From Klebsormidium nitens (Eukaryota > Plantae > Klebsormidiophyceae): a stretch of DNA of 41,053 bases. The translations under genes were made by a program, and so were the position numbers. Below the pieces are notes generated by a model that was not told where the DNA came from, searched no databases, and saw only the letters and a program-made list of their open reading frames with translations. Shown in pieces: positions 2,478-39,350 of the stretch; positions within the stretch are counted from its first letter, which is position 1; every line of letters begins with the position of its first letter. The stretch is taken from positions 1-41,053 of the forward strand of contig DF237674.1 in the NCBI GenBank assembly GCA_000708835.1, read 5' to 3'.

Positions 2478-3953
2478 GGCGAGGGGACGGGGGACCGGGG
2501 CAGCAGGAGCGCTACAGCGTATAACGCGCATGAGCCGGAATAGCGTCTTACGTGGGAGGCGCCTTTTCTCTGCAGTGTCCTTACATCCGGACCACAGTGT
2601 TGATTTACGTCCGTGGTCGTGCCCTCCGGCTCGCTGGGGCTCACGCTCAAGCTGCGTCAACTACAACACATTACACCGTCTGCAACAAGCCTATTCCGCT
2701 TTGAGAGTTGCACTACTGCTCAGTCATAATCTGTAACAATGGAAGTCGTAGTATCAGTTCCAGGAAGCTCATGTATAATTTGTCCTCGAATCGGAGTAGC
2801 AGGACCGGATGAATATTGTGGCAGAAGACAAGAAGCTAGCTACATATGATATGTGTCCAAAGAAGCTGACTCGATAGATGGAAAAGGGTACATTGGATGC
2901 ATGATTGAACTAGAGAAATCTTGTATCAGGATAATCAAGCATACAAAACATAGTAATAAGGCCTTGAACTGCCCTGTTTCCTCTTCCGTGCACGTCGCTC
3001 TCGTGCCTCAGGCTTTTCAGCTTGGTCGCCTCGACGCATATCATGCAGCCACTGTAGCTGATACCATGAACTGATGAACAGAGAACCGTACTCTACCGTA
3101 TCATTCACTTTTTGCCGCACTCAGGCTTTTGCTCGGAATTCGGACTGAATGCCGAGCCACGGCTAAGCCGACCGCCCGCGTCTCCAGCCCAGGTGTGCAC
3201 CTGCCGGCTCGTGTCTCCAATTATGCTGTCGAATCATTGCTCCCTTCTTTGGCACTTCACTTCCAGCGGCCGGGGTCGAGTCTGCAGGGCAGTTGCTTAT
3301 CGACGGTCATCTGTCAAGCCCAACGACTTAAATGGACGGCTTGAAACCGCGACTTTATCATGAGCAATTCTCAACCGTCGGATTTAACTGGCGGTGTGTC
3401 TTGGTATCTCTCCCCTTTGCATGCATCAATCGCTGCATTGCGAACTGTGTGCCAGCATAGCTCAGAAGAACCAATAGGTGACCTTCTCCCTTTTCTTTCA
3501 TAGGCATTCCTCAGTTTCGTCGTTTCCAACGTTGGCCGGCTGCCCTTGCCGTGCCTTGCTGCTTGCACCACCTTGCGGCATTGGGCGACTGTGGGCGGTC
3601 GCTCTGCCCCTCGGGCGCTGTCCTTGGGCGCCACCACTAGCGGCCACGTCCCTCTTCCCCCCTTGTGGCTGCCACGCTGCCTTGGTCGATGGCCCGAGGG
3701 ACGGCCGCCTCGTGCTGCTCGACTGCCTCGCTGCTGCAGCGCTGCAGCACGGGACCATGCTGGGCCAGGCCCCTGGCAGCCCATCTGGCCACTCAGTCAG
3801 CAGCAGCTGGGCAAGGGAAGATGCCATTGCACTGCATGCCAGCAGTAGCCAGGCCATTTGTGCACGTTCACGCGGTGCGGGAAAGTGCTGTAGCAGGCAG
3901 CGGTGTGCACCTTGCACTTGCCTCCCCCTGCCTGCCTGCCAGCCAAGTTCTCT

Positions 3954-6900
3954 ATGGCGGGGCCCGCAGCGCCCCCCTCCCACCCAACGCCATTGCTCGG
4001 GGGGCTGCTCCTCCTGCTGTTGCCGCTGCTGCTGCTTGCCCCCCCGGCTGCAGCCAATGTGCGGCTGGCCTTCCCCCCTGCCCGCGGCCTGGGTGACTTC
4101 TTGTACGCCTCACAGCTGCAGCCCGGCCCCTGCGGTGGTGGGGCGAGGACCATTGGAGCAGTCACGCAGCTGCAGGCGGCGGCCCTGGTCAATGTGTCGT
4201 GGCACAACAGCCACCCCACCCCAGGTGAGCCCACCATTCCGCCAGAGGCTGTCAGGGGCTTGGGCATGCCCTATGGGGAGGGGGCAACTGCAATACCTCT
4301 CCTGCCAGAGCATCCCGGATGCAGGCTGGGTCTGCAGCACGTATGGAGCGCACGATAGGCGGGGGGCCGGAAGGAGCCACAAGGTGCCCCTCTTTGGACA
4401 CCCCCATTGAATAGAGGGCAGGACCGCTGGCAAACCCCTACAGCGTCTGACAGAACTCCATCAATTTTTTTAGTGTTGCACCTCGATATGTGTTCCTAGC
4501 AGTGCAGTCCACTTTCGTGCCCTGGCCACATCATTGTCAACGAGGCCTTCGATAGGGCAGTGTCCAAGCTCACGCCGGTGGGTCGTATGTTGCCTCCTTT
4601 CTATCCTGGAGCTCGCTCTGGTCTTCTCCACTCTGCCTTGCGTTGCCCCACGCCTTGAGTGGATGGTTGATCTGCAGAGTCTCTCCGTTAACTCTGTTCC
4701 GCTCGCACCTACCCCCCCCCCTCTCCTCTCTCCTGCCCCCCGCCGTTCCCCGTTGGTTATGCCTACCCAACCTCCCCCTTCCTGTGTGTGCAGGTGCCCG
4801 CTTCTCCCTGGCGCTGCTGGACGCCGCTGGCTCTCTGCTGGTGCCCTACAGCGCAGCCTCGCTGCTGCCGGGCGGGGCAGCGGGTGGGGCGGACCCGCTG
4901 CAGACGTGGCAGCTCATCCAGCTGCCCGCCCTGCCGTGCCCCAACTGCACGCTGCGCCTCACAGAGATTCTGCCCACCGGGGCTCCCGGCATGTTGAGTG
5001 CTCCCCCCGAGCTGTGGAGCTGTGCTGACGTCAATGTGACCCTTGGCCTGGACGCATGCTCCAACCAATGCCAAGGTACGGCTCCCTTCTAAGCATTCTG
5101 GCCCCTCCCCAGGAACGGTGGCCGCACTGGTGCGGGCCAGAGCCATGCCGCAGCAGTGTGTCATGATGTGGGCGGTCAGGCATCGCAGGGGGCCGCGCAG
5201 CTGACGCCGCTGTCCCTGTCTGCCGGCGTGCAGGGTGGGGCACCTGTGTGCTGGAGCCGGCGGGCCTTGGAGCGTGAGTCCCCCACAGCCGCGCACCTCC
5301 ACCGCAAGAAGGGCATATGCGGGGCTGGATGAGGGTGTCCTTGACAGCCTGCTCTGCACAAGTTGTCTTCCTGTCAAGCTCCTCAACCTTGCGCCCCAGT
5401 TCCTTTCCCCCCAGGCGTGACGCCTGTGCCCTTTGCTGCCTGTTGCCCTGCAGGTTTGCGTGCCAGTGCAACTCCGCGCTCCCCCTGCTGGCCCCCCCTG
5501 GCGCTGCGGCCCCCACGTGCGCAGCGATCTCGGGCACGTACGGCGAGGTGCGGGATGCGTGCGTGGACGACAGCGACTGCGGCGCTGCGGGGCTGTGCGT
5601 GGCGCGCACGCCCTCCCAGCCGCGCCGCTGCTTCTGCAAGGCGGGCTGGAGGGGGCCGCTGTGCACACAGCGCAGCCAGCTCTCGCTGGATGTCCAGGTA
5701 GGTTGTAGTACAGTGGAACGCAATCTTGTCAACGAGCCTTGAAGACGGCTTGACGCATTGACAGACCTTGGCTCCCACTATGTATCACTCGTAGTTGGGC
5801 TTTTCAGCGGCGGCAAAGTCTCCAAGATAGTAGCATCCCAAGTAGCATCCCAAAGGGCATCTTGCATCTATGTCCGCAAGTCTTACAGACAGAGACTCCG
5901 GTTGCTTCGCATTGACTCTTCTATGTGCACAGTCCCTTGGCCTAACTGCGCCTCTGCTCTTTTGCTTGCCGGGCTGCGTTCTGAGCATCTGAGAATTGTG
6001 TGCGGCTGTCTCGCATCGCTCTTGCGGCCTCTTCTTCGCCAGATCCGATCGGCCAGCCACGGGCGCAGACGCTTCCCGCCGCCCTGTTCCGCGCCTGCTG
6101 ACTGGCACTGCCTCTTGTGCTGCTGCAGCTGGACCTGCGCGCGTGGGAGGTGCAGTACCCGGTCAAGCTGCGTGCCCCCGGCGTGGCCGTGTATGCGCGC
6201 ATTGTAGGCCCCCCTCAGGCGCAGCTCATCGAGGTGGCTATGGCCGCCGTCACGGAGTCGTATGTCAGCGTCGGCTGGCGCCCCGCCTCGCTCGACCAGG
6301 TGCGCACCGCTCGTAACCACGTGATGCACCGGTTCTGTGCCCGCTGCCGTGTCTGAGCAAGCCCGCCCGCCTCGTGTCTGCCCCGCCCGCTTACCTTCTT
6401 TTCCGCCTCTCCCCGCCATAAGGGGCGCGTCCCTGTTGGTGCAGGCTGCGGCGCTGCCGGCTCTGCTGCCGGGGCCGGCCACCCTGGTGCGGGAGTCGCC
6501 CTTGGCGCCGGTGTACCAGAACACGTCGCTCCTCTACGATGCTCTCGCCCCTCCGGCGCCGCCGGGGCCCAACTTGACGCTCCTCTTCGGCAGCCCGCCC
6601 TCGGGTCTGCCCCTGGCAAACGGGACGGCCAACATCACCGCCAACGCTACGGCTACCATCGCGGCCAACGCTACGGCCAACACTACGGCCAACACTACGG
6701 CCAACGCTACGGTTGAAGCGGCGGCCAACGTGAGCGCGGGCGCAAGCGCCAATGCGACGGCCGTCCCTGGCGGGCGGCGGCGGCTGCTGCAGGCGGGGGC
6801 GGCCGTGCTGGCCGCTTTCAACCGCAGCAGTCCCGTGGTGGCCGCCCCCGGCCGCCTGCCGCCCAGCTGGCTCGCGGACATCACCGCGTGCTATGCGGTC

Positions 6901-9900
6901 GGGGAATATTTTAAGGTGACGTACGCGCGTTGAAACATTGCCCGGCAGGGTGCCACCCGTCGTGTTGCCCGCGAATGCCTTCGAACCCTGTTTCTTGGCT
7001 GTTTCAGTGCGAAGCTTTCATCAGAGAGCTTGCCTCTAGCTGTGCCTCCTAGCGCGTGTCACAGAGCACTAAGCGAGCCCGGTGCCTTCTTCTGTGCCCC
7101 CTCTGAGTTGCCACGATCTGTGGCCTTCCGTGCTGCCCTTTGCCTAAGCGCGCGCGCGTGGCAGGTGGAGGACCTGGGCGGCGGCGCCGGGTACGGCACG
7201 CCCCTCCCCGACGGCGCGCTGGGCGGCACGGACGACATCGTGGACGCCATCGGGCGCGCCGCGGGCAGCCTCGTCTTCTGCAAGTTCCGCAGGTGAGCGC
7301 GCAACGCCACACACGGCGCGGGGAGGGCCGCGCATGCAGCACGATCTCCGTCCGCGCCGTCATTCTCAAAGTCGGCGGACTCTTTTTAAGCCCCTTGAGA
7401 TTCAAAGGGGTTCAGCCAAGGCGGCGTGTATCCGGTAAAGCCGGTACAGACTGGCTTTAAATCCTGTATCGCAAAAGCAAGGGATGAGTTTTGCACGCCG
7501 GTGAGCGCTGGCCTGTCTTCCAGGCTGTCGTTTGCTGCGTTCCATGCGTTGCGTGCCCGCCCACTGGTGTGCTTGCGCGCGCGCAGGCCGCTGGTGTCGG
7601 CGAACCTGGTGGGCGACCAGCCGGTGACGCTGCGCGAGGACCAGACGGTCATGTGGGCCGTCGGCCAGAGCGGCGCGCAGGCCGCCAACGAGAGCCGCGG
7701 CACACTCGACCGCGCCGCGCTGGAGCAGCTGTACGCGCCCACCGACATGCTCGACCACGGCCGCGCCAACCGGTGAGCGCGCGCGCGCCAGTCGCCACTC
7801 GGCGATAGGCTGTGCGGCTGCCACGGGCCACGGCCGGCGGGGATTGCGCTTGGGTAGTCGAGTGTAATGATGAGGCGCCCGCTGTGGCTGACGCCTTCGG
7901 CGCTTCCCCTTGCAGCGGCGTGTTTGGCAATCTGAACCTCATTTTGGGCCGCCCCGTGGGGGTCGTCTCCCGCGGCACGTGCCCCCCTTCTCCGCTGCCG
8001 CTCTTCGACTGCACCTTCCGCATCAACGCGCGGTGAGCTGTCTCCCCGTCCTTCCCTCCACAGTGAGCGGCTGTTGACGCTTGCTGCCAGCCTGCTGTCA
8101 TTGCACTGCTCTTCCTTCGAGTCTTCGAGAATGGGGACTGGAGTAAGCTGTCCCCTGCCTCTGATCCGCCGCCGCTGTTCTTGCTCCAACTTTCTGTCTA
8201 CCACCTATCTGGTGTGCGTATATTTGGCGAACACGGCTTCAAGACTGCTCTTATCATTAGCCGGCGCTTTCTGGACCAACTTGTAGCACCTTTCTCTTCA
8301 CCCCTTTGCATGTTGCAGGTTCGAGCACCTGAAGCAGATGTCCTTCTTTCCTCGATACCATTCCTTTTGCTGTTGCACAGGTTATGAGAGACAGACGCTC
8401 CATTGCCCCACATGCTCATTGCATCGTTCCTTTCCCCGTGCTCCAGCCTGCGCCTGCACTGGCGCATCGTGGCCGCCTCCATTTCGCTGGCCCTCGAGTT
8501 CCCCGCCTCCGCAGGCTGGGCCGCCCTCGGCTGGTCCTCCGACGGCCGCATGGTGGGCGCCACCGCCGTGCTCGCCGAGCAGCCCGCGGCGGTGCGCCTG
8601 GTACAACTGCAGGCGCAGACCGTCGCCGGCGTGCAACCCAGCACCGTCTTCCCGCTCGCGCACCCGCAGCTGGCCCGCCAAGACGCTGCTACCGCCGTCC
8701 TCAGGTACGCCAACTCGCTGCCCCTCGCCCCGTGCCATCCCGCTAGGCCGTGCTCGCCTCTGGCGGTGGCGGCCCGTCCTGGCTGTCCTGCAGTCACTGG
8801 CCCCCCTCCAAACCCGCGCTGGGCCCCCGTGGTGTGGTGGCCTTCTCGGCGGTCCCGCGTTGCCCTCACCTGTGCGCCCCCTGTGTGCTGTCCCGGCAGC
8901 TTTACGCGGCCGCTGAGCGCGGGTGCCGCGGGCGCCAGCATCGTGGCGGGGCAGGCCAGCCGGCTGGTGTGGGCCCTCGCGGAGGACGGCCGCCTCGGCC
9001 TGCGCTACCACCGCCTGCAAAACAGGTGGGTGCGCGCACCCAGGCCACGCGCCGCAGCGGCAGCACCGCCGGAGAGCAGCCGCCTGCTGAGGATGCCCCT
9101 CCAGTCGGCGGCGCACTCGGGCTTGGCCCCTGCCTGCATTGCTGTCTCGTTGCAAGGACCGTAGACAGCCCGGCGTGCGGAGCGGCTCTGCTCCTAGGGC
9201 GGCCTCCTCCTCTGGCGGGGCTCTCCCTGCCCCCTCCCTGCTCGTCTTTTCTGTTGCCACGCTAACGCATGCTGGGTGCCCCTGGCAGGGGCAGCTTCAG
9301 CCTGGACTTCTCCACGGGCGTGGGCCGCGCCGACCGCAACCCCGTCGGTAAGGGCCCCCGCCTCCGCTCCGCTGCCCTGCCAAGCCTCGCAGCCGTGCAC
9401 AGGTTCCGCTTCACAACCGCACGCCTTCCTCCATTGGCAGCAAGGCTGCCTCGCCTCTGGGCCTGCTCGTTGCGTGTGTCTAGGTGTGCGCTGCGCTGAC
9501 GTGCGGCGCTGGCGCGGGTGCAGACTGGTACGGCCTCCACGGCTGGCTCATGGCGGTCGCCATGGGCGCGCTCCTGCCGCTGGGCCTTATCTTCGTGCGG
9601 GCCAGCCGCGCTAACAAGGTACGCCTGCGCGCGCGCGCCGCAGCGTCCGACCGCCCCCTGCCACTCTCATACCAAATGTATCCGGGCTTAGATCTTGCAC
9701 CCGGTTAGGGAGACGCTAACCAAGGATGGACACGTGGGTACATTCTTGCAGAAGGCTTTTCAAGGCTTTCTTCTTTCTTCTTTCTTGCCCTCCTGAGATG
9801 GAGGACATTTGGAACATTATCTCTGGGCCTTTCAAAAGGCGTTTTCGTGGAGAATGGGGGACAAGATAGCTCTCCTACTTTGGCGGAACCATGGGCGGCA

Positions 9901-11601
9901 GCCATGGCAAAAATCCAAAAGTGCACGCAAACAGCCGTGATGTATACACAATTTTCTAATCGACGGTCCACATCTGCGGTTGGAAAAAGTGCTCGGCAAG
10001 ATGTGGGACCGGACATATTTGGCATGAGACTGCCGTGCCGGTCTGCCTCCTGCTCCGCTGCCGGGGCGCTGCTTCCACCGTGCCGCGGCTGACGTGCGGT
10101 CCCCGGGTATGCTGTGGTGCGTGCAGGCGGAGGCCGACGCGTGGTACTTCGAGGGGGCGCACGTGGCGTTCCAGCTGCTGGGGGCTGCTGCGGTGGCGGC
10201 GGGCCTCACCATCGCGTTCCTCACCTTCCTGGGGGGGCCCGGCCGCGCCATCCACACGCTGCACGGGATTGTGGGGCTCGCCGTCGGCGGGGCGCTCCTG
10301 GCCCAGGTGAGGGGCAAGCGGGGGAGAAGGGGGGTGAAGGAGGAGCGGGGAGAGGCGAAGGGAGAGGCCCCTGGGAGAGGTCACGCTGGAGTAGGGCTGC
10401 CTTGGCGCAAGAAGGGAGCAGATCTGAGTATGTCGGACACGTCGAGCGCAAACGGAGTCAGCTTGGATACGTCTACTGTAGTCGTCTCGCTCGCTGCCTT
10501 ACCCGTGAGTCTCCGCGCGATGCCTGCTGCAGGTGGCGGCGGGGTGGCTGCCCTTCCTGGAGTACACGCCGGCGGTGGAGCGTGCGCTGCGGCTGCTGCA
10601 CGCGGGCGTGGGCTGCGCGGTGCTGGCGGGCGGCAACTGGGCCGTGCTGCTGGGGCTGTACCGCTACGCCGCCTTCACCGGCACGCGCATCTTCGTGAGC
10701 TCCCGCCACTCCCTGCCATCCGCCGCACCGCTGCCGGCCTGGGGCCGCCTCGCCGCTATTCGCTTCTGCGCATGGATCCCCGGCCGCTCGGTGCCTGTGT
10801 TCCCGCTGCCCGCCCCTCTCGGCGTGTCCCCCCCGCCTCACCCTGTCTCGCTCGCCCGTCTCTGCAGCCCCTCGTGGTGGGCCAGGGCGCCACGCTGGCG
10901 GTCATGGCGCTGCTCTGGCTGCTGGCGGCCGTCGGGGCGCGCTGCGTGCGCGGCCGCGCCGGCGCTGCGCCAGGGCGGCCCCCCAGCCCGACGCTGCGCC
11001 CCTGGGTGCCCTCCGAGCTGCAGGGGCCCTTCAAACAAGAGGTGCGCGCAGGTGTCGCAGCCCCGGGGCCGCGCGGGAAGCGAGAGGCCGCAGGCCACGG
11101 CCGCTATGCGGCACCTTAAATGGAGTCTAGAAAGGCGATACAATGTTCGCTACAATTACGACACAGGGGATGCGGACAAAGCTCTTTGCTGATGGTCTGT
11201 GCTGACTTTTAAGGTCTCACGCTTTATTACCAAAAGTACAAGTTCTCGCACGAGAGCTTTGCGGCTGCCCAATGCTCGCGTGCCGCCTGGTTGTTCGGTC
11301 CCCCTCTCTAGCTGACCCGCTGCGTCGCTGGCGGCCCGCGCAGGGCGGCGTGCCCGCGCTCGAGTACGCGCACCCCTTAGCGCTCACGCGCGGCAGCGGC
11401 AGCCAGCGCTTCCTGCTCTCCGACGACGACCTCTTCGACGGCAAGGACTCGCCCGCGCCGCGCACCTACTCGCCGCCCGCGCGCGTGGACCGTCCGGGGG
11501 AAGGCCACCCCAGCGACTCCGTCAGCAGACGGGTCAGCCGGGGCGGACCGGAGGGCGGCCTGGAGCGGCAAAGGTCGTTCCGCGGGTGGGTCAGCCCGTA
11601 G
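3954..11601 (+). CDS. Secreted/membrane multidomain protein, 1073 aa: signal peptide, LPMO/BIM1(X325)-like domain, two EGF-like modules, two DOMON domains, 5-TM cytochrome b561 and a cytosolic tail (extended CYBDOM)
   Basis: 17 GT-AG exons: 3954-4224, 4794-5075, 5234-5273, 5454-5697, 6129-6299, 6445-6915, 7165-7292, 7587-7772, 7916-8032, 8447-8704, 8900-9025, 9289-9347, 9524-9618, 10127-10306, 10533-10694, 10868-11041, 11344-11601. They total 3222 nt with every phase compatible and a TAG stop. Motifs: LLLLLLPLLLLAPPAAA signal peptide; NVRLAFPPAR..GPCGG..CPNCTLRL..LWSCADV; CVDDSDCGAAGLC..RCFCKAGWRGPLC; ESYVSVGWRP..GGTDDI..KFRRPL..VMWAVG..DHG; GWAALGWSSDGRMVGATAV..FTRPL..LVWA..YH; b561 histidines in GLHGWLM, GAHVAFQ, TLHGIVG and LLHAGVG. 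Confidence 0.88.
6628..6711 (+). repeat. Coding 12-bp tandem repeat, 7 units of about GCCAAC(G/A)CTACG, encoding ANxT N-glycosylation sequons
   Basis: Units gccaacatcacc, gccaacgctacg, gctaccatcgcg, gccaacgctacg, gccaacactacg, gccaacactacg, gccaacgctacg translate as ANIT ANAT ATIA ANAT ANTT ANTT ANAT. Confidence 0.9.
9665..10029. mobile_element. Putative MITE (365 bp) in intron 13 of the CYBDOM-like gene
   Basis: Left end tctcataccaaatgtatccgg and right end ccggacatatttggcatgaga are inverted repeats at 18/21 nt, with partial pairing further in (gcaagat). The interior is non-coding and more AT-rich than the host intron. Flanks ctgccac / ctgccgt may be a decayed target-site duplication. Confidence 0.65.
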
Positions 11602-12977
11602 AACAGGGACCGGGGGAGGGCGGAGAGGCCACCGACATCCCGGTGTCCTACTTGACAGCTTGAACGTGCCGAGATCTTCATGAGAGCCCGATGTACCATA
11701 CTCGACTCGAGGTCCAAGTTGGAAGCCGGTTGATTGTTCGTCTAGAGCCTCGACGGCTTCACTAAACAGATTAGGCTCGTATAGTCGGACATAGTCCACC
11801 TTTCTACTTTGCATGTTCACCGCGCAAGCCTGTTATAGCAGCGCAGTGCAAAACTAATTGGTAATCAGTACCATGAGCAGATGTGTAGCCAAGAGCAATC
11901 GCCAAAGTTTCCTATATGCTATTAGAATCTGTTCTAGAGTCCGTTGAACTAGTGAGTCAACAGTGTCATTCCTACTCGAACATTCAAAACTGCTTATATT
12001 GGCCTCTGAGAACGTCGACGTCATACAGCCGCATACAGCTTCCTCGCTGCATTTAGGCGTGTAACATGAGACTCAATCACTGATCATGATCAGCTTACCC
12101 CTCCCCAGAGCATGCTAAACTAGCCAAACGTTGCATTACCATAGGTTTTTCAATTTGGCCAAGCTAGCGCTAAAAGTTTTACGCGACAGTGCATAATTCT
12201 AATTAAAGCGAGCGGGCAGAATATTGCAACATTCTCCGCGCTTGCGAATCTGGGGCCTCGACACAGGACGGGGGTTCGACAATGGAGAAGCGATGGCGAG
12301 CATATAATATGTTGTGCATAGTTAGCCTTCAGTGCGTACCACTTTTGAAAACCTCTGCCTTACACCACGAACGCTTTAATCATACGTTGATTGTAGTGAA
12401 GAAGATGGAAAACAACTTATCAAGTTAAATCCTGGCACAATATTGATGTAATTCGCATGCATGAAAGCCTGTGACTTCTTTGGCTACATGGCACTACTAG
12501 TATAGGTAAGTACTAGCTGCACTACACTTTTGCAAAGCTATGAATGATGGGAGCAAGGCCCAGGCTAGCTGTTGACATTAGTATATTGTGCATGCACATA
12601 CAAAAGTATATGCATGCACAAAGTACACAGCACTTTCCACTTGTAGCAGATTCGGCAGACTATTACAAGTCAGTGATTGCCGCTTGCCCAAAAGCGTCCA
12701 CCATGGTCCAATATTCGTACTCACAGCTAGATTCCAGAAATCGACAGATGGCAAAATTGCTTGATTGATAGCAGGTTTCCCACAAACAATACACAACTCA
12801 TTCGAAACTGTACAAAGGGCTCGCTAACGCCAGCAAGCCGGGAGCTTTGACAACAGACGACACCTTCTGTCGCTGCACAATGCAAACACCTGCTCGAACT
12901 AGTGGAACCAAACAGGGCGGTTCTGCAGCCAGGCTAGAAAACAGACGCCACAGCTGCTCCCCAAGACGTGTAAACTA

Positions 12978-15900
12978 TCAGGAGGCGGTGCTCGGCCTAA
13001 AGGAGTCTTTCAAGGCCTGGACTGAGGCCTCGAACGACAACCGCGACCTTCCTTCCGCCACACTTGCATCTGCTGCGCTCCCCTCTTGCAGGCCCGCTTC
13101 TTTCCTGCGGGGCCCCTTTCTGTGGCGGGCCCTCCCGTTGCCCGCCTCCCCCAGCTTCCGCTCGCCTGGTGCTGGCGCCCCCTTGGGCGCAGGCACGGCT
13201 CGCGCGCGCTCCAGCAGCTCGGCAGCCGCGGCAGGCCGCCCCGCCTGCTGCTCCAGCAGCGACCACTCCTGCCACCCCCACCACAGCAAAGGGCGTCAGG
13301 CAAAGGCACACGCCGAGCAAACCGAGCAACAAAGCAACGCACCAACGCCCGCAACAGCAGTGGGCATGCGGTTGACACCGCAGCATGCTCTACTTCAGCG
13401 CCAGGCCGGAGGCTGTGCTGTGCGGCGGCTCACCGTCCAGGCGGGCTGGTGGCGGGGGTCCATGTACGTGGCGCGCTTGAGCAGCGTGCGCGCCGCGTCA
13501 AGTGCTCCGAAGAGGCGCTCCATGCGCGCATACGCTGTGAGCGGGGCCGGGTCGTGCGGGACCTCCTGCAGGCAGGCCTCGAAGAGACGGCGCGCGCCAA
13601 ACACGTTGCCCGTCTCCGCCTCCAGCAGGCCCCACGCCTGCACCGCGGGCAGGGCGAGCGTGTCAGCAATGCAGCGCAGCGCCGCGGAGGAACACAGCGC
13701 GGCAGGCAGCAGGCATGGAGCGCAGCGCAGGCTCGGCCGAGCGGACGGCCCCAGAGAGCATCGCTGAAGCCCAAGTGGTGGTCGGAGCTGGCCCCTTGGA
13801 TTGACGGGACTGCCACACCTGTCGTCGCGCTTTACAAGGACACAGAAATCTACTCAGGGAACTCAAAAAGGCTCCTTGTGCTCAAACGTGAAGCAGAGTT
13901 CGATCACAACCAGGAACGTAGAAGCAGCACAGTACATAAAAAACCCACCGGAGACTCTCCGACACACAAACACCAAGGAATTCCAACCGCTCAGTAGCAC
14001 CATGCGTGCGTCCGACCACCACCGCTGCAAAGACTGTTCATTCGCGGGGCCAGGCTGAAGGTCGCGGGCTGACCTGCCACGCGGGCGCGTTTTTCTTGTC
14101 GATGTCGAGGCAGCGCTGGTACAGCTCCGTCGCCTTCTCCTTGCCCTCGGGGCAGCCGCGGCGCGCCTCCTGCTTGGCCCACGTCAGCAGCAGGCGCGCG
14201 TCGCGGGGATCCAGCGCCAGCCCCCGCTCAAACAGCCGCCGCGCAGCGCCAAAGTCGCCCTGCTTCGCCTCAAACACGCCCCAGCTCTGCACGAAGCCAG
14301 CACGTGTCAAATGACGTGTGTGCGGCTGGCCCGCAGGCGCTGCCCTGGCCTGGCAGACACCGCGGAGAAGTGGCCCCGTGGTTCTTGCTTGAGGAAGTCT
14401 GCTTGGGGGAACTCAGGCGCGGCAAGTGTAGGCGGCTCACCCACTAACCTCAATGGCAGTCACTCCTGCTGTTCAGTGCAGACGAGAGCAAGCTTGCCGT
14501 GCCTGGCACAGACAGTTGCTGTCGAGTGAGTCCAGACACGAAGTTGCCTGCAAGCGCCGGGCGCACAGGTGCATGGGTGCGCCGCGCGGAGCGTACCTGC
14601 CAGGCGAGCACGTTGTGCGGTGCAGCGGCGGCTGCCAGCTGGAAGTGGTCCCTGGCGGCAGCAATGTTGCCGGCGTCGGCCTCCAGGCGTGCCAGAGTGA
14701 GCCGCAGTACCGCGTCACGGGGCGCCGCCTGCAGCCCCGTCAACAGAAGCGTGCGGGCGCGTGCCACATTTCCCTGTGAGGCAAAGCTCAGCGCCAGCTG
14801 GTGCAGCGCCGCCCCGCTGCGAGGCATGCTGCCCCGCTCCCCGCCCCGCCCCAGCACGTGCCGCAGGGGGTCGGCCCCCGCTCGCGCCGCCGAGACGCCC
14901 CCGCCGCTGCCTCCTTCGGCTGGCCTGCAGCGCGCTGCTGCTCTGGCGCAGCTCCGGNNNNNNNNNNNNNNNNNNNNNNNNNNNNNNNNNNNNNNNNNNN
15001 NNNNNNNNNNNNNNNNNNNNNNNNNNNNNNNNNNNNNNNNNNNNNNNNNNNNNNNNNNNNNNNNNNNNNNNNNNNNNNNNNNNNNNNNNNNNNNNNNNNN
15101 NNNNNNNNNNNNNNNNNNNNNNNNNNNNNNNNNNNNNNNNNNNNNNNNNNNNNNNNNNNNNNNNNNNNNNNNNNNNNNNNNNNNNNNNNNNNNNNNNNNN
15201 NNNNNNNNNNNNNNNNNNNNNNNNNNNNNNNNNNNNNNNNNNNNNNNNNNNNNNNNNNNNNNNNNNNNNNNNNNNNNNNNNNNNNNNNNNNNNNNNNNNN
15301 NNNNNNNNNNNNNNNNNNNNNNNNNNNNNNNNNNNNNNNNNNNNNNNNNNNNNNNNNNNNNNNNNNNNNNNNNNNNNNNNNNNNNNNNNNNNNNNNNNNN
15401 NNNNNNNNNNNNNNNNNNNNNNNNNNNNNNNNNNNNNNNNNNNNNNNNNNNNNNNNNNNNNNNNNNNNNNNNNNNNNNNNNNNNNNNNNNNNNNNNNNNN
15501 NNNNNNNNNNNNNNNNNNNNNNNNNNNNNNNNNNNNNNNNNNNNNNNNNNNNNNNNNNNNNNNNNNNNNNNNNNNNNNNNNNNNNNNNNNNNNNNNNNNN
15601 NNNNNNNNNNNNNNNNNNNNNNNNNNNNNNNNNNNNNNNNNNNNNNNNNNNNNNNNNNNNNNNNNNNNNNNNNNNNNNNNNNNNNNNNNNNNNNNNNNNN
15701 NNNNNNNNNNNNNNNNNNNNNNNNNNNNNNNNNNNNNNNNNNNNNNNNNNNNNNNNNNNNNNNNNNNNNNNNNNNNNNNNNNNNNNNNNNNGTGGCCACT
15801 GCAGCAGACAGGCTGCGCAGAGCCGCGCGCGCCTCGGCCAGGTCCGCTTCCACGCGCTGCCACTCCTCCGCGGCACAATCGCCCCTCTGCTTTGCGGCGG

Positions 15901-18900
15901 TGGCCTCTCGCTCGAGGCAGGCCTGCGCGCGTGCGTACACCTGGGAGGCGCCCGCCCCAAGCGGGTCGCGGCTCTCAAGGTGCCCAAAGAGCAGCCACAG
16001 GCGGCCCTCGTCGGGGTGCCGCTCCGCAACCACGTTCAGCAGTGTGCGGGCAGCGTCGTACCGCCCCTCCGCCATCTGCCGCTCCACCCGTTGCAGCGCC
16101 CGGGCCAGCCCGCGCCCGCGCTCCCCCTCTGTCCCTGCTCGCCCGTTTCCCCCCTCTCCTGCCGGCGCCAGCCCCAGCTCTGCAGGCCCCTCGTTGGGGA
16201 TGCCGGCCAGCCGCCGGTTCAGCTCTTGCCGCGTCAGCACGTGGTCGGCCCCACCGTTGGCCCCCCCCGGAGTGCGGCCGGTGCCAGACGGGGTTGGGCT
16301 GGGGTGCGGGTGCGGCTTGGCGGCGCTGGAGGCGGTGTAGTGGCTGAGCTTGCGGTCCAGGTCGCTGCCCTTCTCCACCAGGAACTCCTGCTCGTCCACC
16401 ACCGCCGGCGGGGCCCCTGCGGCGCGGCCCCCGCGCTGCCGCAGCTCCTCCACCAGCTCCTCCGCAACAGCGCCGCGGCTCGCCACTGCGGCCACGCCGC
16501 TGCCCCCCCTACCTCCGAAGCTGGCCCCGACGGCCTGGCTGCGCGGGGCGCCGCTGCGCGCACCTCCTGCTCCCAGGGCCCTGCCCCCCACCCTCCCCGC
16601 ACTGGCCGCCACGCTGCTCGGGCGGCTGCTACTCTGCACACCCCGCAGTAGTAACTCCCGGCTGCTGCCCTCCAGCCCTGCGCGCCGGGCGCTCGTGTCC
16701 CCGCCTGTGCTCCAGCTTGCGTTGGCCGCGCCGCCTGTGGCTTCCACCCCTCTGTCTGCCCCTGCTGCGCCCTCCTCGGGTCTGGGTCCTGCCTCCGCCC
16801 TGTTGCCAGCCCCCGCAGCAGCTCCCCCCCTCTCGTCTGCATCTTCCGCACACGGCGACCTCTGGGCATCTCCCTCCCCGGGCGCTCCTGGTATCGGCTG
16901 CCCTGTTGTCGCCCCCTTCTCGTTGCCGTCCTCCAAGAGGGGCCAGTACGACGCTTCCGCGACCTCGCCGGGCGGGTCGGCCCAGGCGGCAGCCAGCTGG
17001 GCGTGGATGGCGGCGTCGCGGTCCGGCAGGTCGCGCAGTACGGCGATGCGGCGGCGGAAGAGCGCAAACTCGGCGAGGGACACACTGCCGTCCGTGTTGC
17101 AGTCCAGCAGCGTCATCAGCTCCGCGGCGTCGCCTGCCCCGCTCGCGCCCAGCTCCAACATGGCCGCCTGCAGCTCCTCCACGCTCAGGCGCCCGTCCCC
17201 GTTCTTGTCCAGCATCGCAAACACGTGGTCCTCCGCGGCAGCCCCCGCCACCACCTGCACACCGCGGCCATTGTCAGGGCGCGCCTCCCACCACCGCAGC
17301 CACAAGGCTTGCAGCAGCGAAGCCTAATGCAGCACACTCTGCAGAATGAGTGGATCCACCCCAGTGCCCCTCATGCAGTGCCCCAGGGGCTCAGGCAGGC
17401 TGGGTGCCCCAGGGTGCTCACCGGCGTGGCCCGCCCTGGCGGGGTGCGGAAGCTGGCGGCGGCCATCTGCGCAGCAGCCTCCATGATGAGGCGCAGCTGC
17501 TCCACCTGCACACCCAGCGCCCACGCGCCAACAGTCAGCAGCCAGCGCAGCAGGACCCCAAGCACCAGGGCGGAGCCTGCCAGCTGCAGTAGCACTTGCT
17601 GCTCAAGACAGTGCGCTGTGAGTGACCTGCGTCGACTGCCAGCTGGCATTCCCCACCTGCTGAGGATCGGTGAGGCCCCCCTTGTAGGCTCCATGCGCGG
17701 CAGCCCCCGATACGGCCTGCGCATCCATGCGCTCAGTGCGGACCTGCAGCTCCACAGGGGGGGCCACCCCGCCCCCCGCGGGCTGCACCAGCATGTGCAG
17801 GCTCTGGTACCCGTTCTTCTTGGGCCTCCCAATGTAGTCCTGCACAACCCCGCAACCAGGGCTTAGTAAGCACACACCGCCACACAGCAAAACGCAGCCC
17901 AACGCAGGCGCCTAGACCAGTTCCAGCCCCCAGAGCGCACTGCCCCTCACAGGAGCCTCGTTCTATGCTGGCCCGCGTGAGGGTAGCCCATGACCAGGTG
18001 GGCACTGCTGCGGCTCACCTTGTAGCGCTGCGGGACCTCCTGCCAGAGCTGCAGTGCCACCTCGCGCACGCGGTAGCAGGCCTCCGCCCCGCGCGCCTCC
18101 TCCGCGGCTCTTCCCCCTCCAGGGACAGGCTTAATGATCATGCGCAGGCCCAGCAGGTCGTACACCTCGCTGTGGCCCCGCCCATCCCTGCGTCACCCCA
18201 ACCACGCTCAGCACAAGGACCGCTCTGGCGCAGCGTTTGACACAACGCAACCATCCATGGTCAAGGGGCAGGACGGGAGGTGCTCTGACATCGGCCTGCT
18301 GCATACGGAGCAGCGCGGAGTGCGCGCAGGGGCCTCACTTGAGCTGCTTGCGCATGAAGCTGTAGAGGCTCTTGGTGCGGCTGGAGAGCGCCCAGCTGTG
18401 CGCCAGCTGCCCCATGCGGCTGTCGCGGCGCAGCGCAGCGTCCAGCGCGGCCGTGGCGCCGTCCAGCAGAGCCGGGCTGTCGGCCCAGTGGCGCCGCAGG
18501 AAGGCCTCACACGACGCGTAGGCGGAGGGGTAGAGCACGCGGAACGCGGCGTCCTCCAGCTCCCACATGAGGCTGCCCGTGCCGAGCGCGTGCGCCATGG
18601 GCGCGTAGATGGCCAGCGTCTCCAGCGCCACCAGCGCCTGCTGGTACCGCGGCAGCCCGCCCACGTGCCGCATCGTCTCCAGCCGCGCCGCCAGCTCCAC
18701 CACAATGGCACGCACTGCACCCAGCCACAACAATGGCACGTGAGGAGGTGCAAACGGCTTGGCAAAGAGCTGACGAACAGGACAGGACACAAAGATGAGG
18801 GCAGGAGGCCTGAGCAACATGCTTTGCTTAAGCTGCAGCACATGGCAGCCCCCTGCTCAGTGGTCATGAGCTGCTGCTCAATCCAAGAGCCCTTTACACA

Positions 18901-24226: not shown

Positions 24227-27200
24227 TCATCCGGGGGGGTCGTCGGGTGCGGCTGGGCGGCACTCGCAGCCGGGGCAGTTGTGCAGGCTCTCGTGCACGA
24301 TGGCGTCGCAGTCGAAGCAAAAGTGGCGCGCGCAGCGGGGGCACACCAGACGCACGCCGGTCGCACCACCTGGCAGCCCAAACCGCGAGGTCAGCAATGC
24401 GGCAATGACCCGGGCACAACCTGGCGAGCCGGGAACGACGACATAACAATCTTCGTCTGCCATGCCTCCAACAGGCGCCGGAGTGCCGCGCTCCTTCTTG
24501 ATCGGGCTTAAGACACAGCAACTGCAGTTGGCCCCACCACAAGTCCAAACGGCGCTGCTAGTCTGCGCGTCGCTACCCAGGATGAGCCCGCACCCGCGGT
24601 TCAGGCTGCGGGCAGGGGTCGCGCCTCACCCGCAACGCCGGGCAGCCCAGCCTGGCAGGCGAAGCACGTGGCCGGCAGCGCAGCGGAGGAGGAGGACGCC
24701 TGCAGGCAGAGGGACGAGTCAGCGGAGGAGGCACCAAGGTGGGCCGCGCCAAGCAGGGGGCGGGGGGGGGGGCGGAGTGGGGCGGCAGCGCAGCAGTACC
24801 TGCCACTCGTCGTAGGGCGGCACCGGGAAGAGGTGGTGGTAGCTGCGCGCCAGGTGGGGGGACGACATGAGCGTGATGCTGCACACGTGGCACTCCGTGG
24901 GCAGCTCGCACACCTGCGTCAGCACGACAAGGGTCAAAAGCGCAAAGACCCCCCGGCGAAAGCAGGCCTCCCACTGCACATCCAGTACCGCTGCTCGAAG
25001 ACAGGCGGCGCAGTGGGAGGGGGCCCCTGTCGGCCAGGTGGCGCCCTCCATCTGGCATAGCGTGGGGTGCAGGTTGGCGGCGCGGCGGGGAGGGGGAGGG
25101 GGGCAGCTCACCCGGGCCTTGCAGCGCGGGCAGACGTAGGCGCCGTCCAGGCGGAGGTCGGCGTGGCAGGCGCAGATGCTGGCCGCGCCGTCAGGCTGCC
25201 GCTGCAGGCAGCACAGGCAAGGGGGCGTCACCACGCGCTAGCGCCAGACGTTGAGGCAGCGCCNNNNNNNNNNNNNNNNNNNNNNNNNNNNNNNNNNNNN
25301 NNNNCGGCGACAGGCAAGGGGGCGGTCGACCACGCGCTGCGCCAGACGTTGAGGCAGCGCCGCGTCAGTCAAAGTGGGCCGGACAGGGCGGGGGCGAGCC
25401 AGGAGCGGGGGGACGGGGCCATGCGGGTTACCTGGGGGAAGCCCATGCGGATGAGGCTGGCGGGCGCGTCCTGCTGCAGGGCGGGCGGGGGGGGCGCGTG
25501 CTCCAGCAGCAGGTCGCGCAGGTGGCCCTGCACCCGCCACCAGTCCATGCAGCGCGTCAGGCGGGCAGCCGGCCAACCAGTCCAGCCCGGACACAGCGGA
25601 CAAGGCAGAGGGAGGGAGGGGAGACGGGCGGGGCGTCCATCACTGGGCGGCAGGCATGGCAGTGGAGGCGGGCCGTACCTCGGAGGTGGCGATGGTGTAG
25701 GTGCCCCCGGTGAGGCGGGCCAGCGTGGCGCAGATGTACACCTGCACCGCGCCACGTGCTAGGCAGTCAGGAGCAGGGGGACGCACCGCCAGGGGCAGGC
25801 GGGGGGCACCAAAGGAGCAACGAATGGCGGGAGCATCCATGGAGGCTGTGGGGGAGCGCAGACCGGCGGCCGTGCGACGGGGGGCGAGGGCCCCACCTCG
25901 GCGGCGAGGCCCACGACGGAGCAGCGGATGCGGTGCTTCTTGCAGGCGGCGATGGCCGCGTGGATGTCCCCCGGGTCGCATGTCGTCAGCGCCGACGACA
26001 CGACCACCACCTGCACCAGCACCGCGAGAGCACGGCCGCAGCAGCAGTCAACGGGCATCCCAAGGAAAGCGCGCCAGAGAGCGGTCCGGCCTGGAAGCCA
26101 GGTGGAGCTGGAGGGAGAGGCCAGGAGACAGGAACGGAGGGGCCCCCTCGCCCGGGCAGCGCCACCACTGGGCAGAGTGTGCACCGCGGCGGGGGTGGGC
26201 GGCGGGCGTACCTCGCGGTGGCCGTAGGCGGGGATGGGCGCCAGCGCGGCGCGGGCGAGGTCCAGGCCGTTCTGCAGCGACGCCTCGCCGTCAGCACCCA
26301 GGCTCGCCCTGCAGCAGCAACGCGAGGAGGGGGGGGAGAGCCGCAGCCGTCGTTCAGCAGGGAGAGGAGACAGCCAGGGAGAAGGCCCTATGGACGGTCT
26401 GATAGGTCCTCTGGATATGCAAAACATCGCCGAACATAGGGATGACAATGGAGAAGCGGGAATCAGGAGAGCAGATTTAGGTGCTCGACGGAAATTAGGT
26501 GCAAATCCGGAAGAGCCAAGGGAACGGGGGCAGCGATAAGAAGAAAATCTAAGGAGGAACGCAAGTCGAGGGGAAAAGAAAAGCAAGCACGCCAGACCCC
26601 CCTGGGGACTAAGAAGAAGAAAGACAGGCTGTCGGAGCAGCAGAACAGAATACGCAGCTGCGATGGGGGGAGATAATGATCATGGTCAAGGAATTTGCCA
26701 GCACTCCGGAAACCAGGTTCAGCGCACGCTCACACACACACATGAAGTGAAGGGTACGGGCATGTTGGGTAGGAAACGGAGGGTACTGACTCGGAGAAAG
26801 GGGTTGGGGGAGTTAAGACGGGGGTGGGAGGGAGAACAACAGGGAGAGGGGGCAAGGGCGGCGGTGGCTCACTTGAGGGCGGTGATGTGGGACTGCGGGC
26901 TGCCGCTCAGCTCCGTCAGCTGTGCACACACAGAATATGGCGCTCATCAGCGATGCGAAAAGGCCATAGGGGGTCACCCAACAAGCTAGGAGCCCAGCTG
27001 ACGTGGTGGGGGGGCGGCTCACCCGCTGGGCCACGCCGGCGCGCAGCGCAATGATGCCCAGGTGGCTCAGCGGGTTCTGGTCAAAGAACTCGCGGATGAA
27101 CACCTGCAGCGCACGACACCGCCCTCAGTCCCCGTCTGGCGCGCAGGCAGCCTCCCCATAACACAGTGGCACAGAGGAAGCGCGTTCCGGGCACGGACAT

Positions 27201-39193: not shown

Positions 39194-39350
39194 NNNNNNN
39201 NNNNNNNNNNNNNNNNNNNNNNNNNNNNNNNNNNNNNNNNNNNNNNNNNNNNNNNNNNNNNNNNNNNNNNNNNNNNNNNNNNNNNNNNNNNNNNNNNNNN
39301 NNNNNNNNNNNNNNNNNNNNNNNNNNNNNNNNNNNNNNNNNNNNNNNNNT
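39194..39350. other. Assembly gap (157 N) between the LINE and the Copia element
   Basis: Run of N. Confidence 0.99.

Follow-up and report, generated by a model that had tools for sequence, protein, structure and literature searches.

A predicted CYBDOM-class membrane protein of Klebsormidium nitens with an LPMO/BIM1-like head that starts with asparagine

A seventeen-exon gene and its transcript

The window, the whole stretch of DNA analysed, comprises positions 1-41,053 of the forward strand of contig DF237674.1 of Klebsormidium nitens (GCA_000708835.1). On its plus strand lies an open reading frame of 3222 nt in 17 exons, with all introns of the form GT..AG, the spliced translation of which is a protein of 1073 amino acids (Table 1). 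The phase-consistent 17-exon frame proposed in the original prediction is thereby borne out.

Table 1. Coordinates of the gene, its exons and the features of the encoded protein within the window
Feature	Position	Strand	Basis
Whole coding region, 1073 codons and stop	3954..11601	+	splice model, RNA joints, relative's exon structure
Exon 1	3954-4224	+	splice model
Exon 2	4794-5075	+	splice model
Exon 3	5234-5273	+	splice model
Exon 4	5454-5697	+	splice model
Exon 5	6129-6299	+	splice model
Exon 6	6445-6915	+	splice model
Exon 7	7165-7292	+	splice model
Exon 8	7587-7772	+	splice model
Exon 9	7916-8032	+	splice model
Exon 10	8447-8704	+	splice model
Exon 11	8900-9025	+	splice model
Exon 12	9289-9347	+	splice model
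Exon 13	9524-9618	+	splice model
Exon 14	10127-10306	+	splice model
Exon 15	10533-10694	+	splice model
Exon 16	10868-11041	+	splice model
Exon 17	11344-11601	+	splice model
Predicted signal peptide, residues 1-34, Leu-rich core, ...PPAAA before cut	3954..4055	+	hydropathy, small residues at -3/-1
Asn35 codon AAT, at LPMO/BIM1 N-terminal His position	4056..4058	+	translation, RNA contigs
LPMO/BIM1-like module, first half, residues 35-90 (NVRLAFPPARG..PCGG..SWHNSHP)	4056..4224	+	Pfam, three-taxon alignment
LPMO/BIM1-like module, second half, residues 91-178 (CPNC..LWSCADV)	4794..5056	+	NCBIfam
Two EGF-like modules, Cys179-Cys220 (exons 2-4) and Cys234-Cys268 (exon 4)	5057..5664	+	six-cysteine patterns, Pfam
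Candidate distal DOMON1, residues 280-637, exons 5-9, split by long insert	6129..8032	+	motif reading only
Low-complexity insert rich in N-x-T/S sequons (exon 6)	6445..6915	+	sequon count, TRF
Membrane-proximal DOMON2, residues 638-785, exons 10-12	8447..9347	+	Pfam, kept Met/His
Met672 codon (DOMON2, ..SSDGRMVG..)	8550-8552	+	
His760 codon (DOMON2, ..YHRLQNRG..)	9009-9011	+	
Cytochrome b561-type domain, five helices	9524..10957	+	hydropathy, Pfam on relative, language-model neighbours
His790, His828, His862 and His899 codons (b561)	9538, 10160, 10262, 10599	+	translation
Predicted cytosolic C-terminal tail, residues 961-1073, RRVS and RQRSF sites, then stop	10958..11601	+	translation

Introns 1-12 are present as joints with exact borders in spliced RNA contigs (four runs, drawn from four studies), and intron 13 is indicated by RNA contig ends which, at 9619, read into the start of exon 14. 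The predicted 17-exon transcript is to this extent seen in RNA, whereas introns 14-16 have their support in conservation, namely conserved blocks matching exons 13-17 and an identical exon structure in a close relative. As exons 1-13 and, in unbroken frame, the beginning of exon 14 are contained in a single RNA contig of 3,776 nt, the N-terminal part and the DOMON/b561 part lie on one mRNA and form one polypeptide, so that the proposed joining of LPMO-like, EGF, DOMON and b561 parts in a single chain holds. The length of this contig fits a 5' leader, the 3222 nt and a 3' UTR of approximately 430 nt, the fitted end of which falls just before the only TGTAA. That the long reading frame is an annotation artefact fusing two adjacent genes is hardly credible; the general caveat applies that a single transcript is not proven by a contig which bridges two genes, and no point in support of a fusion was found, while the unbroken frame of the contig, the identical joints in three further studies, the fitting length and the same frame-preserving exon structure in the relative all speak against it.

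The relative retains all 17 exons and an intact reading frame with a dN/dS of 0.25; the frame is under purifying selection. By region, dN/dS is 0.20 for the second half of the head (residues 91-178), 0.14-0.18 for the DOMON1 region and 0.20 for the C-terminal tail, which is conserved in the relative.

The membrane-proximal DOMON and the cytochrome b561 domain

Domain profiles were scanned exon by exon, and all domain matches are exon-sized and below the curated cut-offs. For exon 10, Pfam DOMON is the sole match (E 1.7e-5, with 7.4e-6 for the relative), under the 32.7-bit cut-off because just 85 of the approximately 150 residues of this membrane-proximal domain (DOMON2) could be scanned. The domain ends four residues before helix 1; its Met672 and His760, 88 residues apart, are kept in the relative, and the sequence around the methionine is similar to the SxDxxMG motif known from animal CYBDOMs, proteins combining cytochrome b561 and DOMON (PMC10691727).

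The five helices of the adjoining b561 domain are placed by hydropathy at residues 789-813, 827-855, 857-886, 900-919 and 928-960, and the four conserved histidines, with a spacing of 38/34/37, are each located near the start of helices 1-4 respectively. Pfam Cytochrom_B561 (PF03188) is the sole match on exon 14 of the relative (E 0.04; 14.6 bits, where the cut-off is 23), the K. nitens exons scanned singly gave no PF03188 match, and the language-model neighbours are Atlas b561 clusters (score 0.86, 180 shared features). All six predicted haem ligands are kept in the relative, where the adjacent His859 is an arginine. The codons originally named as those of the four b561 haem histidines and of the methionine and histidine of DOMON2 are confirmed, and both domain labels stand, with the expected family as the best or only match, under cut-offs for the single exons.

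Topology, as judged from the signal peptide and the five helices, would place the C-terminal tail in the cytosol; the 16 N-x-S/T sequons without exception, and all but two of the 22 cysteines, are N-terminal to helix 1. The arrangement is that of the Arabidopsis proteins HYP1 and CRR, in which a signal peptide and an extracellular Met/His DOMON directly precede a five-helix b561 domain with two histidine pairs (PMC10784544, PMC10784552). In HYP1, where His-to-Leu changes abolish the trans-membrane current, the Met-His spacing is 84 and the His-His spacing 34/33/36 (PMC10784544), values nearly matched by the K. nitens protein. Because of the five helices, the two histidine pairs, the DOMON Met/His pair and this HYP1-like ligand spacing, the reading of the membrane-proximal half as having the anatomy of a CYBDOM electron conduit is supported, and the same ascorbate-driven three-haem conduit as in HYP1 and CRR may be expected.

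The EGF modules, the sequon-rich stalk and the conserved tail with its RRVS and RQRSF sites would also suit a surface receptor or adhesion molecule, with EGF modules, stalk and head doing the work, the b561 domain serving as redox sensor or anchor and the phosphorylatable tail signalling. The retention of all six haem ligands and the constraint on b561 and DOMON2 argue that electron transfer has been retained, though, and the tail is without a signalling domain, which leaves such a receptor improbable.

The extracellular part and its histidine-less head

Distal to DOMON2, the first of the two DOMONs originally proposed (DOMON1) could not be confirmed. Motifs such as ..YVSVGWRP.., ..FCKFRRPL.., ..VMWAVG.. 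and ..DHGRANRG.. can be read in this region, but exons 5, 7, 8 and 9 gave no Pfam match in K. nitens or in the relative, no tool gave a match, and a Smith-Waterman comparison of DOMON1 with DOMON2 was not above shuffles (z = 0.69). By a reading of motifs rather than an aligned profile, the haem-ligand position has no methionine. The insert encoded by exon 6, which is eight codons shorter in the relative, holds 12 of the protein's sequons (residues 362-462) and a tandem array at 6625-6712 (period 12 nt, 7.3 copies; TRF). As for the two EGF modules, the second is recognized by its cysteine pattern (234-240-246-257-259-268) and by profile (Pfam EGF_Teneurin at E 1.1e-4, its 22.7 bits just short of the 24.3 required, and four other EGF models), while the first, which spans three exons, is assigned by its six-cysteine pattern.

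The head follows the predicted signal peptide, the hydropathy of which peaks at residues 9-40 and the cleavage site of which, placed by the small residues before it, is conserved in orthologs. For its first half, the sole match is to the Pfam BIM1-like_dom (residues 34-85 against profile positions 2-50 of 140; E 0.12, 13.3 bits against a cut-off of 27), and its second half matches NCBIfam sce4755_fam, a polysaccharide monooxygenase-like family, in three taxa (E 0.013, 0.0012 and 0.13; profile positions 110-145 of 146, 12.3-18.9 bits against a cut-off of 75), in both cases with exon-sized pieces. The language-model neighbours of the head, SCE4755, LPMO_10 and BIM1-like clusters, all score below 0.9 and are leads only. 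A module of the LPMO/BIM1 type, as predicted, thus has weak collinear family matches in its favour, but these are below the cut-offs and the first residue is not a histidine; with scores so far below the family cut-offs, the gene is not filed as a member of X325/BIM1 or SCE4755.

The head might instead be a lineage-specific beta-rich domain unrelated to LPMO/BIM1, with the matches arising from short motifs (FPPARG, PCGG, CADV). This would agree with the low bit scores of both matches and language-model scores, with PDB searches by head sequences and profiles, which gave no match, with phmmer, which was run exhaustively against 1.84 billion representatives and returned nothing but two ORF fragments from close relatives, and with the failure to obtain a fold prediction (AlphaFold2 restricted to exon 2, three input sequences, pLDDT 43, model unusable). 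On the other hand, each independent half has an LPMO-like family as its sole match, and order and register are right, from the start of a 140-position profile to the end of a 146-position one in a module of approximately 145 residues. As the family had been named in advance in the original prediction, the per-family probabilities are approximately 5e-6 and 1e-6 or lower, and the signal peptide is predicted to be cut exactly before the residue aligned with His1 of the H-x-x-L-x-x-P-x-x-R-G pattern. An unrelated head is consequently regarded as unlikely.

An N-terminal histidine is, to our knowledge, the defining residue of every histidine-brace protein. Its amine and imidazole provide two of the three ligands of the brace (PMC10952591). 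The mature N-terminus of the K. nitens protein, from the predicted cut ..PPAAA|NVRL.., is Asn35 and not histidine; the nearest histidine upstream is His10, within the signal peptide. The asparagine is kept in three taxa (AAT in K. nitens, AAC, a synonymous change, in L001, AAT in L002) and conserved across a dS of approximately 0.85, and the RNA contigs of four runs contain no letter variant at its codon. Because the first mature residue is an asparagine kept in three taxa and free of RNA variants, a canonical histidine brace is impossible in the head as predicted. Histidine-brace proteins also have a second, internal histidine as copper ligand, joined in X325 by an aspartate. The K. nitens head is under purifying selection, its His84 and His87 (SWHN[ST]HP) and Asp169 (CADV) are invariant in the three taxa, with His84 located where the match to the BIM1-like profile ends, and the CPNC motif is retained, so that the head could bind metal non-canonically.

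Known relatives and the proposed function

Cellobiose dehydrogenase's cytochrome domain reduces fungal LPMOs in trans. Its DOMON-type Met/His b-haem is likewise an extracellular electron donor and provides the functional link between DOMON and LPMO, but there a soluble system, with a flavin dehydrogenase as its driver, serves separate LPMOs with an intact brace, whereas the K. nitens protein is predicted to be membrane-bound, presumably ascorbate-driven and equipped in cis with an LPMO-like domain without the brace. On the lines of the original prediction, electrons from cytosolic ascorbate would pass via b561 and the DOMON haem or haems and end at a metal in the LPMO/BIM1-like head, which would oxidise wall polysaccharide, reduce or capture copper as BIM1 does, or make reactive oxygen species. 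Such a chain draws on the presence of every part in one polypeptide on one mRNA, on the collinear head matches to two LPMO-like families, on the conserved His84/His87, Asp169 and CPNC, on the head dN/dS of 0.20 and on the established reduction of fungal LPMOs by a DOMON-type cytochrome. Against it, the brace histidine is replaced by asparagine in all three taxa, DOMON1, itself unconfirmed, reads as without the haem methionine, and the head is approximately 450 residues away from the DOMON2 haem, with the two EGF modules and the putatively glycosylated insert of approximately 150 residues in between; for AA9 relatives with arginine or lysine at the histidine position no activity was seen, as cited in PMC6950343. 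The N-terminal module as a redox-active terminus is not supported, a copper centre terminating the wire is unlikely, and the chain as a whole is judged quite unlikely. Because of the asparagine in place of the essential copper-binding histidine, the outermost domain more probably serves for binding than as the terminus of a redox wire.

Loss of the N-terminal histidine has a parallel in the LPMO superfamily, in AA9-like proteins which are maintained with arginine or lysine at His1, one of which, when tested, had no oxidative activity (Frandsen et al. 2019, in PMC6950343); they are secreted, single-domain and fungal, and belong to another LPMO family with another replacement residue. The fungal LPMO-like copper proteins X325/BIM1 (PF20238) and the monooxygenase-like family SCE4755 (NF043005) share with the K. 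nitens head a module of approximately 145 residues right after the signal peptide, weakly and collinearly matched, the N-terminal pattern x-x-x-L-x-x-P-x-x-R-G..PCGG and the C-terminal ..CADV.. strand. Unlike X325/BIM1, a single domain with a C-terminal GPI anchor, the K. nitens module starts with asparagine, has neither brace nor GPI anchor and would be tethered via EGF, DOMON and b561 parts.

Plant HYP1 and CRR are approximately 400 residues long with nothing N-terminal to the DOMON, in contrast to the approximately 600 extra residues (LPMO-like module, two EGF modules, candidate DOMON1 and sequon insert) and the 113-residue tail of the K. nitens protein. Among animal CYBDOMs there are forms with an additional N-terminal module, the reeler, and forms with two DOMONs (PMC10691727), and SDR2/FRRS1 and CG8399, together with the two-DOMON proteins of some insects, come closest in architectural logic. 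Their head, however, is a reeler domain, for which exons 1 and 2 gave no match at E up to 5, they are without EGF modules, and the two-DOMON insect proteins have Met/His in both DOMONs, while the distal K. nitens copy seems to lack the methionine. One sentence of a 2019 profile-tree survey mentions LPMO-related clusters with Pfam DOMON/EGF domains (PMC6950343); this passage, the sole published mention found of LPMO-type, EGF and DOMON parts in one sequence group, names no taxa, b561, residues or function. Novelty, as originally suggested, would hold for the full LPMO-like/EGF/DOMON architecture with b561, of which no description was found in the literature, but not for N-terminal modules and paired DOMONs in CYBDOMs or for LPMO/DOMON/EGF clusters as such. 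The CYBDOM class is already known, and the composition of the head differs from that of known members.

Taken at the level of sequence, the gene product is probably a CYBDOM-class type-I membrane protein with five helices, a surface reductase driven by ascorbate, the LPMO-like/EGF head of which serves for binding and is not catalytic. By analogy with HYP1, CRR and SDR2, cytosolic ascorbate would reduce the inner b-haem (His828/His899), from which the electron would pass to the outer b-haem (His790/His862) and next to a third b-haem, for which Met672 and His760 of DOMON2 would be the ligands. At the solvent-exposed edge of the DOMON haem, the electron would then go to an acceptor outside the cell, for example ferric or cupric chelates, monodehydroascorbate or another, separate protein. 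The more distal part of the ectodomain, with the candidate DOMON1 apparently lacking the haem methionine, the sequon insert, the EGF modules and the Asn-first LPMO/BIM1-like module, would be a non-redox binding or positioning head, which, in a role akin to that of the reeler of animal SDR2/CG8399, may for example hold the reductase at a glucosamine-rich wall or at a partner.

A single spliced transcript and its conservation

Rebuilt from 3700-11900, the gene encodes 1073 residues in a 3222-nt ORF composed of 17 exons, with GT..AG at every intron, which reproduces exactly the phase-consistent 17-exon ORF of the original prediction; the start codon is the first in-frame ATG downstream of an in-frame TAG, and the codons proposed there as haem ligands indeed translate to His790, His828, His862, His899, Met672 and His760. 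Part of the stretch is contained in 19 public runs, and the best shares (0.31-0.46) are close to 0.41, the proportion of the 6-kb query made up of exons, as expected for RNA. Read layout over 3900-9899 in four runs, from four studies and under two organism labels, gave spliced contigs with GT..AG joints at precisely the predicted borders of introns 1-12, with no alternative letters or indels reported over this interval. In all four runs the contig match ends at 9619 and continues with the start of exon 14, which indicates intron 13. The RNA label of these runs is a guess, but the intron-skipping joints demonstrate that the contigs stem from spliced RNA. A single 3,776-nt contig carries exons 1-13 and continues into exon 14, so that separate transcripts for the N-terminal and the DOMON-b561 parts, which had been named as a refuting observation, give way to one mRNA. 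This contig corresponds to a leader of 121 nt, the 3222 nt and a further 433 nt, its calculated end at ~12034 falling just before the only TGTAA. For introns 14-16, located outside the layout, the blocks conserved with a close relative coincide with exons 13-17, intron interiors being unaligned, and the same exon structure in this relative provides a second support. The gene and its transcript are real and well supported.

The orthologue of the close relative was rebuilt from two contigs of one sample, the loci L002 (reached via the protein match P0001) and L003 (via P0007). It possesses 17 of 17 exons with AG/GT borders and an intact ORF of 1064 residues; exon lengths are equal except for exon 6 (-24 nt) and exon 17 (-3 nt). 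All putative ligands are retained; dN/dS is 0.25 overall and 0.14-0.50 in the individual parts, the signal peptide excepted. In a more distant relative, the 2.2-kb locus L001, exons 1-4 are kept in order.

Several features of the locus accompany this gene model. RNA contigs of two runs reach 378-425 nt upstream of 3900 and, if collinear with the genome, would stand for a long 5' leader in which four uATGs lie out of frame, with uORFs (86-200 codons) overlapping the main start, making translational control possible. Intron 10 is in frame and stop-free, such that its retention would add 65 residues to the membrane-proximal DOMON2 with the ORF unbroken; it has next to no depth in the contigs of the four runs. 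Intron 13 comprises 508 nt here versus 136 nt in the close relative; ~390 nt, including a microsatellite, are without counterpart in L003, which may reflect a gain of sequence at this locus or its loss from the relative.

Coordinates of the gene, its parts and neighbouring features
Feature	Nucleotides	Residues	Remark
Gene, plus strand	3954-11601	1-1073	ATG at 3954
In-frame TAG	3891-3893
Putative 5' leader	~3475-3953
uATGs	3689, 3757, 3821, 3836
LPMO/BIM1-like module		35-178	exons 1-2
C-P-N-C pair	4939-4950	139-142
Probable DOMON1		280-637	exons 5-9
Exon 6 tandem array	6625-6712		12-nt unit, 7.3 copies
DOMON2		638-785	Met672, His760
Intron 10	8705-8899		195 nt
Intron 13	9619-10126		L003: 4186-4321
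Segment absent from L003	9640-10030		within intron 13
CTTTCTT microsatellite	9766-9786		within intron 13
Predicted helices 1-5		789-813, 827-855, 857-886, 900-919, 928-960	hydropathy
Tail with RRVSRG, RQRSFRG	11500-11598	~1040-1073	predicted cytosolic
TGTAA	12060
N runs (assembly gaps)	14958-15791, 25264-25304, 27681-28325, 39194-39349		first run causes the apparent GC of 0.15 at 15001-16000

The membrane-proximal half and the middle of the protein

Plant CYBDOMs, proteins combining cytochrome b561 and DOMON, have recently been shown to use cytosolic ascorbate as electron source for the apoplast; an H-x-x-x-G-I motif occurs among them. They are established ascorbate-dependent ferric/cupric reductases (PMC10784544, PMC10784552), and the algal members TEF22 and Cre14.g609900 of Chlamydomonas are putative ferrireductases (PMC4855317). 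As family, PDB and fold tests were run on single exons, all scores to be discussed are lowered. Exon 10 alone matches solely Pfam DOMON, with an E of 1.7e-5 and of 7.4e-6 in the relative. Hydropathy predicts a signal peptide followed by five helices, and the location of 16 of 16 N-x-S/T sequons and 20 of 22 cysteines before helix 1 agrees with an ectodomain outside the cell and a tail in the cytosol. The four histidines are placed near the start of helices 1-4, whereby helices 1 and 3 would carry the outer and helices 2 and 4 the inner haem. Arabidopsis HYP1, an experimentally tested plant member, equally has a five-helix b561, and replacement of its outer His pair abolished the trans-membrane current (PMC10784544). 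Ligand spacing is 88 residues for Met-His and 38/34/37 for His-His here, compared with 84 and 34/33/36 in HYP1.

The single-exon scan gave no Pfam b561 match on the b561 exons of the window; exon 13 weakly matches DUF2427 (E 0.13), which co-occurs with PF03188 in one Atlas cluster. Exon 14 of the relative, 90% identical to its counterpart here, has Cytochrom_B561 as sole match (E 0.04, profile 37-79 of 137), and the language model places the window's exon 14 beside 'eukaryotic cytochrome b561' clusters (score 0.86 with 180 shared features), which are leads rather than proof. PDB sequence and profile searches with the DOMON2 and b561 pieces were blank. On profile, helix, ligand and neighbour evidence together, we accept DOMON2 and b561 as a putative CYBDOM core. 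Within it, His859, suggested as helix-3 ligand by the H-x-x-x-G-I motif, was rejected, as it is Arg in the relative, whereas His862 (codon 10262) is kept, which favours the ligand originally assigned to this helix. The basic-residue/serine sites of the tail, mostly kept in the relative, may be targets of phosphorylation and could in this way control the reductase.

Towards the N-terminus, two six-cysteine patterns were recognized as EGF modules, the second matching EGF_Teneurin (E 1.1e-4) and four other EGF models. From the two DOMONs of the original prediction, DOMON2 is recovered by its Pfam match; the distal DOMON1 shows DOMON-like motifs by eye and a ~150-residue insert rich in N-x-T sequons, single-exon scans gave no Pfam match in the window's species or the relative, and neither BLASTP, phmmer nor Smith-Waterman with shuffled controls (z = 0.69) revealed significant similarity to DOMON2. 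We regard this region as a probable DOMON. Judged by motifs, the haem Met position falls in ..PSWLADI.., which contains no Met, and a Met/His haem in DOMON1 appears unlikely. The tandem array of exon 6, part of the sequon-rich insert, has the unit ACGGCCAACACT and codes for T-A-N-T repeats, which form successive N-glycosylation sequons; L003 has 8 codons fewer in this region, the length of which seems variable.

The N-terminal module and its first mature residue

In fungi, the LPMO/BIM1 superfamily takes electrons from DOMON-type cytochromes. Exon 1 has BIM1-like_dom as sole Pfam match (E 0.12, residues 34-85 on profile 2-50 of 140), and the end of exon 2 solely matches the NCBIfam SCE4755 'polysaccharide monooxygenase-like' (profile 110-145 of 146; E 0.013, 0.0012 and 0.13 in three taxa). 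Among the language-model neighbours of exon 2 are SCE4755, LPMO_10 and BIM1-like clusters, all below 0.9. While all family scores of these exon-sized queries are far under curated cut-offs, two independent halves point to LPMO-like families in the right order and at module length, and the family had been named beforehand; we therefore consider membership of the module in the LPMO-like superfamily quite probable.

Divergence of the module is nevertheless very high. When residues 30-90 (exon 1) were compared exhaustively by phmmer with 1.84 billion representatives, two ORF fragments only (P0001, P0002) were recovered as relatives, and word-indexed protein searches returned the query itself or nothing, apart from P0007, which led to L003. 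PDB sequence and profile searches with exons 1 and 2 were blank, metagenome scans with alignments of both N-terminal halves gave no relatives, the window's own exon-1 ORF is not on record by exact look-up, and the window contains no paralogues of the module. An AlphaFold2 model of exon 2 alone from three sequences (pLDDT 43) was discarded. Four giant proteins (P0003-P0006) were rejected as relatives, since their alignments break up into numerous short pieces rich in Gly/Pro, which recur every 57-93 residues and individually score close to zero. Three of these, P0003, P0005 and P0006 (1906-6810 aa, one with a SprB repeat match), show 8-14 short periodic ..G..PGPCGG..-like stretches against the exon-1 query, a likeness judged to be motif or compositional and not homology.

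LPMO-type proteins start with H-x-x-L-x-x-P-x-x-R(-G). Here, the signal peptide ends with ..PPAAA and the mature protein starts with N-V-R-L-A-F-P-P-A-R-G, Asn35 occupying the His1 position in register; the same region reads ..AAANVRLAFPPAR and ..ATANIQLVFPPAR in two relatives. With the codons AAT, AAT and AAC in the three taxa and a module dS of ~0.85, Asn has been kept through synonymous change. RNA contigs of four runs contain no letter other than that of the Asn codon, and the sole His upstream, His10, lies within the signal peptide. The histidine brace consists of the amine and imidazole of the N-terminal His plus a second His (PMC10952591); with Asn35 in place of the N-terminal His, the module lacks the hallmark of the family. 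AA9 relatives carrying Arg or Lys as first residue are described as having no activity (as cited in PMC6950343). His84, His87, Asp169 and the C-P-N-C pair are invariant, and the module dN/dS is 0.20; the module is functional, though a canonical copper centre is probably not its role. The original prediction of an LPMO-like terminal module as redox end of the wire consequently finds no support and is improbable: for a single chain ending in copper, the key residue is missing. The extracellular CxxC, which overlaps the sequon N141-C-T, may serve as a disulfide, as a redox pair or in metal binding.

A probable CYBDOM with an extended head

In the most likely reading, the protein is a trans-membrane reductase of the CYBDOM type with electron exit at the DOMON2 haem; it would carry a non-catalytic head extension, built from a pseudo-LPMO-like module, both EGF modules and a probable DOMON lacking haem. 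Animal CYBDOMs likewise include members with an N-terminal reeler module of unexplained role and some with two DOMONs (PMC10691727); literature searches retrieved no paper joining CYBDOM and LPMO, or histidine brace, DOMON and transmembrane. That the head instead binds copper or iron via the free N-terminal amine, His84/His87 and Asp169 (or the C-P-N-C pair), being reduced in cis by the DOMON2 haem, we consider improbable. If true, an LPMO-superfamily domain would for the first time be coupled within one chain to an ascorbate-driven electron conduit across the membrane, as a self-contained machine for reducing or capturing metal at the surface or for oxidising the wall.

Returning to the preferred reading of a reductase with a non-catalytic head, practical importance stays modest as long as the head is not found to bind metal, and an LPMO-like label should be taken as catalysis only once the first mature residue has been checked. 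The gene represents a transcript-verified algal CYBDOM with a putative N-terminal module from the LPMO/BIM1 superfamily; the brace is lost, yet the fusion would record an evolutionary association of both folds in one chain and offers a concrete construct for probing the role of extra CYBDOM heads, which may be substrate/wall targeting or metal handling.
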